Assembly: GCA_950097015.1 (NCBI GenBank)
Contig: CATNEN010000032.1
Span: forward strand, 1,116,001 to 1,180,000
Reading direction: 5' to 3'
DNA length: 64,000 nucleotides
Source: Macrostomum hystrix
Taxonomy: Eukaryota > Animalia > Platyhelminthes
Under the pieces are notes generated by a model. That model was not told where the DNA came from. It saw nothing but the letters and a program-made list of their open reading frames with translations, and made no database searches. Each line of letters starts with the position of its first letter. Within the stretch, counting starts at the first letter, position 1. This document shows, piece after piece, positions 5,668-33,337 of the stretch. Made by a program: the position numbers and the translations under genes.

Positions 5668-6781
5668 GTTGGGATCTAAATGGGATTTTTTTCTATTTTA
5701 ACGCGGATAGATATGACCCCTGGCAGTGCAAGTCAGTGGCACAGCTGCAGCTATTGCGCGGCGCTGTGTACAGGCTGTGTACACTCCAGCTAATGCCAGT
5801 ATGCCATTTTACAGCTGTGTACAGCCCTGTGTACTCCCTAGCTTATTTTGGTACCCATTTAATAGCTGTATACAGCCCTGTATACACCCCAGCTAATGCT
5901 GGTACCAAATTAACAACTGTGTGAATTGAAGCACTGGGTTATTAAGTGTCTTGCTTAATGAAACATATTGCTTTAAGGCTTCATGCATGGGTTGAAGCAC
6001 AGAGCAATGATAATCTAAAAGCCAGCCTACTGTCCAGTGGGCCAGCCACTGTGAGCATACTCACAGTATTTGAATTGGAGGCCCTTGCATAAGCCAATAC
6101 GTTAAATCTGGGCCAAAGAAATCAACTGTTAATCTGCTGGGACAAATCCGCGAGTTATCGGGCCGGGCCGGGACCCGGGCATTAGCTGATGCGGCTGAGC
6201 CTTGTAAATCAAGGAAATTGCATTTGCGCACCCGGGTTCAGCAGGGGAGGGCTGGTAATGAAATGCATGACACCCAGCATTGTCAGTACAGAAATTCGCT
6301 CCAGCAGCCTCAATAGCCCGCCCTAATCCCTGGGAGATTGATCCTCAAAAACAGTTTCCCTGTTCAGTTAAAAGAACTAGATATAGATGCTGGCTTTCCT
6401 GGACTAGATTCATTCCATTACTCAAAAGCTTCCTTCCTGCCCGGACCGGACAGTCTTACTTTTTATTGCTCAGAACAGAGTCCTGCCTCCTGCGTGTCTC
6501 TGTGCGGGTCTGTTTAGACAAGGAAAAGTTGTCCAAGCGTTTGCCACCTGAGTTGGACACCGATGACTGCTGAGCAGCCCAGGACAAGTCGCTTATCCGA
6601 CTCTGACGAATGCGTTTCGTAGAAGAGAATGGCCTAACTTAGAGAATGATAATAGATTCTGGAAAATGGCTTATTCCACTAAAGGGTAGAGAAAATTGGA
6701 TTAGAAATGAGAGAATGAGATGAGAGAGACCTGCACTTAAAAGAATGCTAAAATCTTGTAGCTTCGACTGTCAATGAAAAC

Positions 6782-6782
<1 letters not shown>

Positions 6783-6873
<91 letters not shown>

Positions 6874-6898
6874 AAGTTAGTTAGTTAGTTAGTAAGTA

Positions 6899-6973
<75 letters not shown>

Positions 6974-7000
6974 AAGTTAGTTAGTTAGTTAGTTAGTTAG
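6783..7000. repeat. (TTAG)n microsatellite, left block
   Basis: About 54 ttag units with occasional taag. Confidence 0.98.
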
Positions 7001-7063
7001 ACGAATGTAAAGAAACCACGCACACAGAGTAGGAATCTCTCTTAATTGCAAGTTGAATCAGTC

Positions 7064-7102
7064 GACCAATATTTCGGCCCTTACTGGGCCTTCGTCAGGG
7101 TC
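7064..7102 (-). ncRNA. Minimal type I hammerhead ribozyme, copy 1
   Basis: Minus strand reads GACC-CUGACGA-A-GGCCC-AGUAA-GGGCC-GAA-AUAU-U^GGUC. Stem I GACC/GGUC, core CUGANGA, 5-bp stem II, GAAA, palindromic AUAU in place of stem III, AUU cleavage triplet (predicted cut between 7068 and 7067). Confidence 0.85.
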
Positions 7103-7344
7103 CGTTTATTTGAGAAGCGAAGAGAGCGAAGTTTGAGCGAGACTTTTATAGCGACAAATAAATGGTATTGAGAGTGGATAGGCTGAGCAGGCACGATGAA
7201 CAAGTGTACATGCAGCCAACTAAAAATGTGCCAGAGACTTAAAGGTCTTAGAGTCAAATTCAAAAATGAATGAAGCATCGCTAACATTCAACCAGGAATA
7301 GGGTGGGTAGCAAACGATAAAATTTTGCAGCGAACACACAAAGG

Positions 7345-8090
7345 TCACGGCTGACATGGGCAGTTCAAACAGGAACGAAGAGTTTTAACTGAATGAAAAG
7401 AATGACTGCAACTGGCAGGTTGGGGAAGTCTGAGCGCAGACCTTCCGCGTGCCGAGTCCCTGAAGCACAGGCAACTCGACCCTGCCGTCTGGGGCCCGAC
7501 GTTGTCACGACCGACGTTGGGCAGATGATGTAGGACACAATTGAAGGGCAGATCGACTGCTCCAGGCAGGTGGGGAAGTCTGAGCACAGACCTTCCGGGT
7601 GTCGAGCCCCTGAAGCACAGGCAACTCGACCCTGCAGTCTGCGATCCAAACTGGTCATGGCTGACATTGGACAGATGATGTAGGACACAATTGAAGGGCA
7701 GACCGACTGCTTCTGGCAGGTGGGGAAGTCTGAGCACAGACCTTCCGGGTGTCGAGCCCCTGAAGCACAGGCAACTCGACCCTGCAGTCTGCGATCCAAA
7801 CTGGTCATGGCTGACATTGGACAGATGATGTAGGACACAATTGAAGGGCAGGATGACTGCTTCTGGCAGGTGGGGAAGTCTGAGCACAGACCTTCCTGGT
7901 GTCGAGCCCCTGAAGCACAGGCAACTCGACCCTGCAGTCTGCGATCCAAACTGGTCATGGCTGACATTGGACAGATGTTGTAGAGCACAATAGAAGGACA
8001 GAATGACTGCTTCTGGCAGGTGGGGAAGTCTGAGCACAGACCTTCCGGGTGTCGAGCCCCTGAAGCACAGGCAACTCGACCCTGCTGTAG
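7345..8090. repeat. 150-bp tandem repeat, about 5 copies, inside the hammerhead element
   Basis: Matching motif ggcaggtggggaagtctgagcacaga recurs at about 7414, 7565, 7715, 7865 and 8015. Confidence 0.95.
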
Positions 8091-8156
8091 TGCTGATGCC
8101 GGTGGTGCAACTCGTACGAAATCGGTGCAGATGTTCTCGGCTCGAGTCAACGTCAT
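7365..8156 (-). CDS. Hypothetical 263-aa ORF of Cys-rich 50-aa repeats carried inside the hammerhead element
   Basis: ATG-initiated and open across the 150-bp array on the same strand as the ribozymes. A second frame (7345-8196) is also open, so openness may be a by-product of the repeat. Confidence 0.25.
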   Translation of the reverse strand: MTLTRAENICTDFVRVAPPASALQQGRVACASGARHPEGLCSDFPTCQKQSFCPSIVLYNICPMSAMTSLDRRLQGRVACASGARHQEGLCSDFPTCQKQSSCPSIVSYIICPMSAMTSLDRRLQGRVACASGARHPEGLCSDFPTCQKQSVCPSIVSYIICPMSAMTSLDRRLQGRVACASGARHPEGLCSDFPTCLEQSICPSIVSYIICPTSVVTTSGPRRQGRVACASGTRHAEGLRSDFPNLPVAVILFIQLKLFVPV

Positions 8157-8347
8157 TGGTGATTCGCAGGTCTCTTTCGTACTGACTTCGTCTCAATCAG
8201 AGCCAAGTGCGGCTTCTTAACGGCAATAAACAATTCAACAGAAAAAAAGAAGAGAAACCAAACACTGGTCCCGGGAGTAGATAGACGAATGTAAAGAAAC
8301 CACGCACACAGAGTAGGAATCTCTCTTAATTGCAAGTTGAATCAGTC

Positions 8348-8386
8348 GACCAATATTTCGGCCCTTACTGGGCCTTCGTCAGGGTC
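8348..8386 (-). ncRNA. Minimal type I hammerhead ribozyme, copy 2
   Basis: Identical to copy 1, 1284 bp away (predicted cut between 8352 and 8351). Confidence 0.85.
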
Positions 8387-8628
8387 CGTTTATTTGAGAA
8401 GCGAAGAGAGCGAAGTTTGAGCGAGACTTTTATAGCGACAAATAAATGGTATTGAGAGTGGATAGGCTGAGCAGGCACGATGAACAAGTGTACATGCAGC
8501 CAACTAAAAATGTACCAGAGACTTAAAGGTCTTAGAGTCAAATTCAAAAATGAATGAAGCATCGCTAACATTCAACCAGGAATGGGTGGGTATAGTAAAC
8601 GATAAAATTTTGCAGCGAACACACTTTC

Positions 8629-9321
<693 letters not shown>

Positions 9322-31544: not shown

Positions 31545-32480
31545 TCTACTTTTCTGATCTGGCACTCTACCTTTATGATCTGTCACTCTACCTTAGTTAT
31601 CTGTCACTCTACCTTTAAGATCTGTCACTCTACCTTTATGATCTGTCACTCTACCTTTATGATCTGTCACTCTACCTTTATGATCTGTCACTCTACCTTT
31701 ATGATCTGTCACTCTACCTTAGTTATCTGTCACTCTACCTTTATGATCTGTCACTCTACCTTTATGATCTGTCACTCTACCTTAGTTATCTGTCACTCTA
31801 CCTTTATGATCTGTCACTCTACCTTTATGATCTGTCACTCTACCTTTATGATCTGTCACTCTACCTTACTTATCTGTCACTCTACCATTCTGAAATGCCA
31901 CTCTACCTTTCTGATCTGTCTGTAACTCTACCTTTATGATCTGCCACTCTACCTTTACTCTCACTCTCACTGCCCAATCTGTCACTCTCACTGCCCAATC
32001 TGTCACTCTCACTGCCTAATCTGTCACTCTCACTGCCCAATCTGCCACTCTCACTGCCCAATCTGTCACTCTCACTGCCCAATCTGTCACTCTCACTGCC
32101 CAATCTGTCACTCTCACTGCCCAATCTGTCACTCACACTGCCCAATCTGTCACTCGCACTGCCCAATCTGTCACTCTCACTGCCTAATCTGTCACTCTCA
32201 CTGCCCAATCTGTCACTCTCACTGCCCAATCTGTCACTCTCACTGCCCAATCTGTCACTCTCACTGCCCAATCTGTCACTCTCACTGCCCAATCTGTCAC
32301 TCTCACTGCCCAATCTGTCACTCTCACTGCCCAATCTGTCACTCGCACTGCCCAATCTGTCACTCTCACTGCCTAATCTGTCACTCTCACTGCCCAATCT
32401 GTCACTCTCACTGCCCAATCTGTCACTCGCACTGCCCAATCTGTCACTCTCACTGCCTAATCTGTCACTCTCACTGCCCA
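31545..32480. repeat. Two adjacent 21-bp minisatellites (tctgtcactctacctttatga; tctgtcactctcactgcccaa) filling an aGPCR intron
   Basis: Switch between unit types at about 31955; both share the tctgtcactct core. Confidence 0.96.
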
Positions 32481-32495
32481 ATCAATCTGTGATAC

Positions 32496-33337
32496 CTTGC
32501 CGAAGGCGGAGTCGACGCCGGGCAGCACAATGATGAGGCTCTTGGCGTACATGATGCCCTCGCAGAGCAGCCAGAAGAACACGCACAGCAGGGCGTACAG
32601 GGTGAGGCCGGAGAGTATCTGGCAGCCCAGGTGGCCCAGAGCTGTCGGGGGATTAAATCCTAGCAGGTACAAAGCGTGCGCAACCAGTAGAGCGAAGCAT
32701 AGGCTGTGATGCACCCGGTGGAGAGTGACCACAGATTTGTCAGCCAGGGGACCGCGAAGCTTGATGGCCAAGTAGGTGATGTTGGTGACCAGCAGGCAGG
32801 CGATGGAGGCGCCAAGGCAAATGTAGGTCAGCACTCGCAGGGCCGTGGAGTGCAGGCGCCACAGGCGGTGGGTCTCGGGTCCTAGCCAGGTGGTGCCGGG
32901 CAGTACAACCGCGGCGAAGCTGGTGAGGTGCTCGCAGCTGCAAGCTGTCTGACTGGCGTCTGACAGTTCGGCCACCGGACGGCAGCCGCGCTCGGAGAGT
33001 GAGGCGTCGGCCTCGAGGAAGACGCAGCGACGCTGGGAGGCGCCAATCTGAGCATCGGCGAGGTGGGGCAGCAGGAGGAGGACGCGAACCGGTGAGGTGA
33101 GGCGGGCCCCGCTGTCCGCGGAGTACAGAGTGGCCTGAACAATCTGCGACGCCACGGGTCGGCCGGCGTTGCCTAGGCGACGAATCAAGCCAGGCAGGTT
33201 GACAACGCAGGTTACCATGGAGACAGGCGGAGAAGCGAACGCGTTGGCGGGCGCCGAGTCGATTAGATTGACTTTGACGGCTGCAGAGTTGGAGTGCATT
33301 GTTGCTGAGCCGGACTTCACGCGGCGGACGGACATGG
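32496..33337 (-). CDS. Adhesion GPCR exon: GAIN subdomain B, GPS motif, TM1-TM3
   Basis: RCVFLEADASLSERGC...TACSCEHLTSFAAVVLP (GPS with HL/T), then LTYICLGASIACLL and FFWLLCEG. Acceptor gcgcag|CC (phase 1); donor AAG|GTATCA. Confidence 0.93.

Follow-up and report, generated by a model that had tools for sequence, protein, structure and literature searches.

The 64,000-nucleotide stretch of Macrostomum hystrix DNA analysed here (the window) contains, at 6998-8624, a mobile element inserted in a tetranucleotide microsatellite. Its two direct repeats (6998-7339 and 8282-8624; 99% identity) start 1284 bp apart, as the first-pass annotation had reported for near-identical repeats at this spacing. 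The genomic copy is confirmed to comprise one unit plus an upstream partial copy of about 340 nt, hence the 1.27 units given previously. The element is very likely a non-autonomous, internally deleted derivative of a Penelope-like element (PLE), with its RNA sense on the minus strand and a hammerhead ribozyme motif in each pseudo-long terminal repeat (pseudo-LTR); it would be mobilised by PLE machinery in the manner proposed below. The element and its copies are called family A. Families B and C are coding relatives found in the same genome. Labels such as L071 refer to loci retrieved from the genome. The features are listed according to their position.

6782-7000, no strand: (TTAG)n target microsatellite, left (Tandem Repeats Finder, TRF; period 4, 54.8 copies). 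The final TAG (6998-7000) is either target or element tail.
7001-7339, minus strand (RNA sense): 3′ pseudo-LTR, the 3′ untranslated end of the full unit (direct repeat). The 16 copies with the usual 3′ end stop here, at TAG/ACGAATG.
7001-7029, minus strand: conserved 3′-terminal motif, GUGCGUGG ... UUCGU (alignment), common to the coding PLE families B and C.
7064-7102, minus strand: hammerhead 1, minimal type I of the PLE kind, predicted cut 7068/7067; hallmarks according to PMC4209133.
7345-8196, minus strand: open reading frame (ORF) of 283 aa, in a different frame from the 263-aa ORF.
7365-8156, minus strand: ORF of 263 aa spanning the tandem repeats, judged to be a by-product of stop-free repeats and not a gene.
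7404-8085, minus strand: 4.5 tandem repeats of 150 nt, each with a 67-nt core of two hairpins (TRF; blastn, 71-85% to L071/L072; covarying pairs, RNAalifold).
8086-8284, minus strand: 5′ region of the unit (alignment with families B and C).
8284-8263, minus strand: conserved 5′ terminus, CUAUCUA CUCCCGGGACCAGUG (alignment with B and C).
Within 8086-8284, minus strand: second conserved island, CCGCACUUGGC, further inside the unit than the 5′ terminus (alignment with B and C).
8285-8624, minus strand: 5′ pseudo-LTR, an upstream partial copy corresponding to the last ~340 nt of a preceding unit (total about 1.27 units).
8348-8386, minus strand: hammerhead 2, identical to hammerhead 1, predicted cut 8352/8351.
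8625-8629, no strand: TTTCG, five additional bases at the 5′ junction that belong neither to the element nor to the microsatellite (sequence).
8629-9321, no strand: (GTTA)n target microsatellite, right (TRF; period 4, 173 copies).

The two long repeats differ only by a single substitution (G/A at 7230) and by a small complex cluster of indels at 7300-7311. The letters specific to the element begin with ACGAATG at 7001 and 8285; the TAG that precedes them may belong to the repeat or to the microsatellite. The whole element is embedded in a single (TTAG)n array (6782-7000 and 8629-9321; TRF), and the interval between the long repeats is filled by the 4.5 tandem 150-bp repeats (7404-8085) plus some 200 bp of unique sequence. 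Pfam gives no significant match for any ORF of the element, the only hit being a weak, sub-threshold one to an unrelated family, in line with the previous statement that neither reverse transcriptase (RT) nor endonuclease is encoded. An ORF with RT and GIY-YIG endonuclease, which defines an autonomous PLE, is absent from the window ORFs and is found in the relatives B and C. For annotation, the element is an ordinary transposable element and its ORFs are not to be called genes.

On the minus strand, both repeats (7102-7064 and 8386-8348) read GACC CUGACGA A GGCCC AGUAA GGGCC GAA AUAU U/GGUC, where the slash is the predicted cut. All bases of the hammerhead core are present in order (CUGANGA ... 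GAA ... UH), with a helix I of 4 bp and a helix II of 5 bp. The complete minus-strand hammerhead claimed earlier for both repeats is confirmed for the core bases and stems I and II, and the cuts then predicted (8352/8351 and 7068/7067) agree with this reading of the motif. Helices I and II form when a single hammerhead is folded (-16.6 kcal/mol, z = -2.3). Helix III is replaced by a palindrome, AUAU in families A and C and AAUU in family B, which is self-complementary in all cases; this agrees with the PLE-type class, in which helix III has just 1-2 bp and a palindromic loop that allows dimers. The A that follows CUGANGA and the closing G-C pair are invariant across families A, B, C and C′. 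Four features have been published as characteristic of metazoan PLE hammerheads: one additional base inserted between A9 and G10.1, pairing of G10.1 with C11.1, a helix I of reduced length, and a palindrome formed by 15.2-16.2 and loop 3, which implies that the active form is a dimer of two copies (PMC4209133). All four are found in the motif of the window; the extra A and the AUAU are therefore read as the normal signature of a PLE hammerhead and not as oddities. A pattern search of the 220-Mb genome gave 15 and 14 matches to the motif, versus 0 and 1 in the control read backwards. All these matches are copies of family A, and a looser pattern likewise found family A only.

Conservation of the motif was examined on six distinct variants from families A, B and C and from a fourth copy (L071, minus strand, CUGA at 5801). 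On the hammerhead structure, 98.5% of the cells are paired, compared with at most 48.5% in controls with slid partners; these values refer to a small set of three or four independent lineages, in which the helix III palindrome is scored as two pairs. Compensatory double changes affect the outermost pair of helix I (G-C to U-A), the fifth pair of helix II (C-G to A-U) and the middle of the palindrome (UA to AU, giving AUAU or AAUU), which remains a palindrome. Two additional pairs vary to wobbles. The untranslated region (UTR) around the hammerhead cannot be aligned between families A, B and C. The first-pass annotation held that its reading would fail if the core mutated freely in other copies while the flanks were conserved. 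The opposite is seen: the core is kept with compensatory changes and the flanks diverge. In an old copy (L008/L036, 92-95% identical) the core is mutated, which is what a dead copy would show.

Copies of family A were counted by searching the genome with the repeat and then by BLAST of the whole unit against the retrieved loci. About 19 were found, dispersed in the genome, so that the refuting condition set earlier, a lack of other genomic copies with conserved hammerhead cores, does not apply. Sixteen share the 3′ end TAG/ACGAATG. The 5′ ends of the 19 copies (including three with unusual 3′ ends) lie at unit positions 57, 69, 70, ~116 (three copies), 202, 238, 251, 329, 468, 820, 886, 904, 1172, 1267, 1316, 1317 and 1627. 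A common 3′ end associated with varied 5′ truncations indicates target-primed reverse transcription of a minus-strand RNA, copied from a fixed 3′ end with frequent early stops. The targets are (GATA)n arrays, or (GTTA)n for the window copy and L019. The exception, L013 (G000:C39:17678675), is a copy in a 21-bp minisatellite (units like GATTAGCTAAGAAGATAGACG, containing GATAGAC), whose junction still follows TAG. The usual junction is WTAG, then the element. A long upstream partial copy is found in the window copy only; L010 and L021 hold 33 nt of one.

Several copies have particular ends or arrangements. L015, L016 and L014 (G000:C39:13192090, C10:3291121 and C34:3335253) are independent copies whose 5′ ends coincide, a short way upstream of the hammerhead and about 116-120 nt away from the 3′ end, which suggests either a master copy of about 120 nt or a favoured joint at AGAG/ATAG microhomology. 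L011/L014 contain two truncated copies of family A. The copies with unusual 3′ ends are L010 (G000:C38:7245325-7246273), L012 (C32:203119) and L021 (C12:3103344-3103657). One of these ends, at unit position 67, is 2-4 nt past the cleavage site; L010 and L021 both begin 33 nt into the upstream repeat; the joint of L021 is at CAUUCU, which is similar to the normal terminal CAUUCGU.

The direct repeats could also have arisen by local DNA duplication or microsatellite-mediated recombination, with a motif resembling a hammerhead by chance. The locus does lie in a long microsatellite prone to recombination, and the Rfam hammerhead models give no match. This origin is nevertheless hardly credible, given about 19 dispersed copies with truncations of the retrotransposon type, 14-15 matches to the motif versus 0-1 in the control over 220 Mb, and a motif that covaries across families. 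Moreover, the unit joint of the element recurs in coding PLEs: the junction CGU-CUAUCUA-CUCCC of the window element matches the unit junctions of families B and C.

Family B was reached through weak genome matches of the 150-bp repeats (L071 and L072). Its layout, on the same strand as in A, is a unit joint CGT-CTATCTT-CTCCCAGGACCAGTG, followed by an ORF that starts MPNNQRSW, is open for 450 aa in L072 and contains 1.5 copies of the 150-nt repeat. The 3′ end of the family B unit carries a related hammerhead and a terminus that abuts (GATA)n. In L004, the order is YIDDIF RT motif, CX4CxxC, GIY-YIG core, hammerhead in the 3′ UTR, and CGT/CTAT. L073 is truncated at the 5′ end and flanked by (GATA)n tracts. 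Both L004 and L073 contain a GIY-YIG core that includes internal cysteines, as well as a C-x4-C-x2-C linker. The match of the family B endonuclease to Pfam GIY-YIG is below the cut-off (E = 0.003). Family C adjoins a family A copy in L007, where positions 2001-2894 match Pfam GIY-YIG (E = 2e-4). Its nearest Atlas clusters are eukaryotic (GIY-YIG and HTH_animal). Further features of family C are a hammerhead, the unit joint and an ORF that begins with MPSNNRTW. The endonuclease matches of family C lie within open frames of 865, 775 and 712 aa; intact helper PLEs therefore probably exist in the genome. The endonucleases of B and C share 62-65% protein identity. The family B copies whose ends were read (L004, L072 and L073) abut (GATA)n or (CTAT)n, as do those of A, and the family C copy in L007 adjoins such an array. 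The first-pass annotation proposed a search for autonomous partners with RT and GIY-YIG; coding PLE families that share termini, hammerhead and target sites with the element are present in the genome. A genome search with Pfam GIY-YIG gave just two cellular-looking frames of about 310 aa, the PLE endonucleases falling below the cut-off of the model, and a search with RVT_1 gave about 2000 candidates, whose top-ranked families were of no help in locating the PLEs.

Other observations concern these relatives. Candidate full-length copies of family C lie near C37:3204500-3209200, C1:5552107 and C38:4604667. A third relative (G000:C5:4532796-4534204), with 73% identity to the 5′ region of family B across its full 1450 nt and endonuclease matches close by (C5:4532214 and C5:4538075), is possibly another full-length PLE family. 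In L004 (positions 1-1841, G000:C33:3374675-3376515), a degenerate B copy is followed by 14 bp of (CTAT)n and then by a 5′-truncated A copy in like orientation; the pair could result from two hits in one array or from a composite insertion by template switch. A polyprotein ORF of the Ty3/gypsy type, 1469 aa long and apparently intact (protease, RT, RNase H, integrase; L072:1422-5831, minus strand), abuts the break point of the family B copy in L072.

What aligns between family A and families B and C is limited to four islands, namely both termini (the 3′ one being GUGCGUGG ... UUCGU), the repeat core and the hammerhead. The remainder cannot be aligned. The best interpretation of family A is therefore that it derives, by internal deletion, from a PLE related to B and C. 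It is a new family within a known class of elements. Over the internal repeat core, A and B show 71-85% identity (blastn, L071/L072). Its 67-nt segment is the best conserved nucleotide segment between the families, with identities of 85% for A versus B and of 91-92% for B versus loci adjoining endonuclease matches of family C. The core repeats lie at 7404-8085 of the window, L071:7218-7433 and L072:6966-7181, and in B they are inside the N-terminal region of the ORF. The large cargo of repeats and ORF described in the first-pass annotation is retained only in part. The repeats are present; the ORF does not stand as a gene, having no significant Pfam match and no significant protein similarity to the ORF of B. 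The notion of an ORF cargo was dropped after BLASTP of the 263-aa ORF of the window against the 450-aa ORF of family B proved not significant (E = 0.22). By the alignments, the so-called cargo is the 5′ region of the parent PLE itself, with a repeat expanded from 1.5 to 4.5 copies; it is neither a foreign insert nor a gene.

The consensus fold of twelve core units from A and B on the sense strand has two hairpins (RNAalifold; -25.35 kcal/mol, versus -19.0 kcal/mol for the antisense strand). One pair varies among GC, CG and AU and a second between AU and UA; several changes are wobbles that pair on the sense strand only. A 1-nt indel inside the core shifts the reading frame of A relative to B. 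Given this indel and the non-significant BLASTP, the conservation of the core lies at the RNA or DNA level and not at the protein level. That the core is kept and multiplied in a non-coding derivative suggests a role in cis.

Anatomy, copy spectrum, shared targets, homology with coding PLEs and covariation of the hammerhead are shown; mobilisation in trans, self-cleavage in vivo and the purpose of cleavage are inferred. The core of the first-pass annotation, a non-autonomous Penelope-type element with a type I hammerhead in its pseudo-LTRs, is supported by the copy spectrum, which resembles that of target-primed reverse transcription, and by the coding relatives. The following series of events is proposed. 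A transcript reading through the end of the unit would carry a tail of the CUAU or CUAA type. The RT-endonuclease of a related coding PLE (B or C) would nick (GATA)n or (GTTA)n after TAG, and the nicked DNA end would pair with the RNA tail and prime complementary DNA synthesis from the fixed 3′ end. Early stopping of the copying would produce 5′ truncations. The 5′ joints would often form at short homologies such as AGAG or TAG, which may account for the recurrent ends near 116 and 1316-1317. Where copying continued onto a second or joined template, a partial tandem, i.e. pseudo-LTRs, would result. Two hammerheads 1284 nt apart may pair through the palindromic AUAU into an active dimer, cut at 8352/8351 and 7068/7067, and thereby trim or release RNA. 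Release of a 1284-nt monomer and its circularisation, as in the first-pass annotation, would be a further inferred step.

Two copies bear on cleavage. L017 ends with ...GTCGACC, followed by ATAG repeats, so that its first transcribed base is G1.1, directly after the predicted cut. L018 is one base shorter; its flanks are different, and the two are therefore independent insertions. An RT stalled by a folded ribozyme is expected to stop before copying GGUC, not after. The chance that two 5′ ends fall within a 3-nt window is about 0.002-0.004, estimated from the local density of 5′ ends (eight others in the first 350 nt). These starts are hints that the ribozyme cuts in vivo.

Alternatively, the hammerhead could be a passenger inherited from the 3′ UTR of the parent PLE, which takes no part in propagation and whose cleavage, if any, is incidental. 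Whole PLE clades (Naiad, most Chlamys) thrive without hammerheads, and the same study raises the possibility that hammerheads simply parasitise PLEs (PMC8557442); the low in vitro activity of PLE hammerheads and the mutated core of the oldest copy, L008/L036, also fit this explanation. It is nonetheless thought unlikely: the hammerhead is among the few conserved islands in the diverged 3′ UTRs of A, B and C, its helices (including the palindrome of helix III) are maintained by compensatory changes, it outlasted the deletion that created family A, and two copies begin at its cut site.

Several results weigh against a PLE derivative mobilised in trans and cut by its own hammerheads. The Rfam hammerhead models, a check proposed in the first-pass annotation, gave no match over the whole window at gathering thresholds or over 6950-8680 at E of 10 or below; these models probably miss the motif because it has no helix III hairpin to align. 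(Rfam matches to AniS, TeloSII_ncR30, PART1_3 and DUF805b were dismissed as chance.) The published PLE hammerheads cleave poorly in vitro (PMC4209133). Cofolding of two hammerhead copies with ViennaRNA favours a duplex of the GUCGAC palindrome beside the cut over the helix III dimer. Families B and C are candidate helpers whose identity with A is only about 70-85% in the shared islands. Unusual 3′ ends occur in three copies (unit positions 67, 96 and 1003). The chance estimate for L017 and L018 is rough and post hoc, and no family B copy starts at its own cleavage site, few B copies being truncated in that range. Among public sequencing runs, none recorded as RNA contains the element.

The GUCGAC palindrome (minus strand, 7059-7067 and 8343-8351) starts one base past the predicted cut, and the duplex preferred in cofolding has 14 bp. 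Family B is devoid of this palindrome.

A cycle resembling that of retrozymes is another possible, if rather doubtful, explanation. The two hammerheads would release a 1284-nt RNA that a host ligase circularises, and the circle, not a linear read-through RNA, would be the template; RT would prime at the CUAUCU unit joint and run round the circle, so that copies exceeding one unit would result directly. In two public runs of one study (library type unrecorded), a contig some 800 nt in length joins 8056-8584 to 7302-7584, i.e. goes back 1283. Its order (internal, LTR, internal) is absent from the assembly, where joints from internal sequence to repeat are found only in the window, L010 and L021, and its repeat reads G at 8514 and agrees in its 3′ part with the 6998-7339 copy, as for a ligated monomer. 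However, a strain with at least two tandem units, or a path of the de Bruijn graph through the repeat, yields an identical contig, which is compatible with a circular or tandem intermediate and no more. Also in favour of a circle, the unit joint of both A and B includes 1.75 units of the target microsatellite, and the upstream partial copies differ in length (33 nt or 343 nt), but the fixed 3′ end is equally well explained by a linear read-through RNA with a microsatellite tail. Circular RNA intermediates have been published for animal retrozymes (PMC7229834); the element is unlike those described in size, copy arrangement and ribozyme type.

A broader version of this cycle is judged improbable. 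The hammerhead pair would release a circularised 1284-nt RNA, whose CUAUCU joint primes on nicked (GATA)n; the two-hairpin module would recruit a protein or serve in packaging, and the pseudo-LTRs would come from rolling around the circle. If true, it would unite pseudo-LTR formation, microsatellite targeting and hammerhead function in PLEs, and the element would be a minimal map of the cis needs of PLE RT.

Two further classes were considered and rejected: a plant-type LTR retrozyme (the hammerhead is of type I and the relatives are PLEs) and a telomere-attaching PLE devoid of endonuclease (the flanking tetranucleotide microsatellites are internal, and an endonuclease is present in the relatives).

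As a deleted PLE derivative, family A can be compared with four published groups of elements. Minimal hammerheads are known from the pseudo-LTRs of metazoan PLEs (Cervera and de la Pena 2014, PMC4209133), and their cleavage as dimers has been reviewed (PMC6765202). The carrier of the motif in the window differs in having no RT or endonuclease ORF. Its helix II has 5 bp, versus 6-8 bp in the motifs of Schistosoma and Drosophila virilis.

Insertion bias toward microsatellites and non-autonomous PLEs that form pseudo-LTRs have already been published (PMC8557442). Like the MRC1-type elements of Chlamys (Chlamydomonas; Craig et al. 2021, PMC8557442), family A lacks RT and endonuclease, forms pseudo-LTRs and shows a bias toward microsatellites; head-to-tail insertions and a likeness to autonomous families found mainly at the 3′ end are also shared. 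Unlike family A, Chlamys are PLEs of green algae with an N-terminal endonuclease and mostly without canonical hammerheads, whereas the relatives of family A are animal elements with a C-terminal endonuclease, a CX4CxxC linker and hammerheads; A also keeps the 5′ terminus and the internal RNA module. The clades with a CX2-5CxxC linker are given as Neptune and Nematis (Arkhipova 2006, as cited in PMC8557442), and this linker has been proposed to mediate the microsatellite bias in Neptune (PMC8557442). The RT of B and C precedes a C-terminal GIY-YIG with C-x4-C-x2-C in front of it, a likeness to Neptune and Nematis in the linker motif. The targets are tetranucleotide arrays, (GATA)n or (GTTA)n, versus (TA)n or (CA)n reported for the Naiad and Chlamys clades (PMC8557442).

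Animal non-LTR retrozymes (Cervera and de la Pena 2020, PMC7229834; Li et al. 2026, preprint, doi 10.64898/2026.07.22.740005) are, like family A, non-coding with type I hammerheads. They have been proposed to derive from PLE pseudo-LTRs and to be mobilised by PLEs (PMC7229834; doi 10.64898/2026.07.22.740005). As in these elements, the unit from hammerhead to hammerhead could be released and circularised. Animal retrozymes have units of 150-450 bp in multi-copy tandem arrays, canonical hammerheads and abundant circular RNAs (PMC7229834). In contrast, family A has a 1284-nt unit, is dispersed and usually 5′-truncated, and carries a minimal PLE-type hammerhead; only the window copy exceeds one unit. 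The size of the unit, its arrangement and the type of ribozyme thus place family A outside the definition of animal retrozymes, but it may function in the same way.

Elsewhere in the window (32457-33335, minus strand), an ORF carries GPS and 7tm_2 domains (secretin family) and is thus an exon of a gene for an adhesion-type G-protein-coupled receptor, which fits an animal genome.

The role of hammerheads in PLEs and the origin of pseudo-LTRs and of the microsatellite bias are open questions in the field (PMC8557442, PMC6765202). Family A provides a defined substrate of 1.6 kb, with candidate helper PLEs in the same genome, that is suited to assays of cleavage, circularisation and retrotransposition. 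It can be viewed as a small deletion experiment of nature, which retains four RNA segments in the absence of the coding regions for RT and endonuclease.

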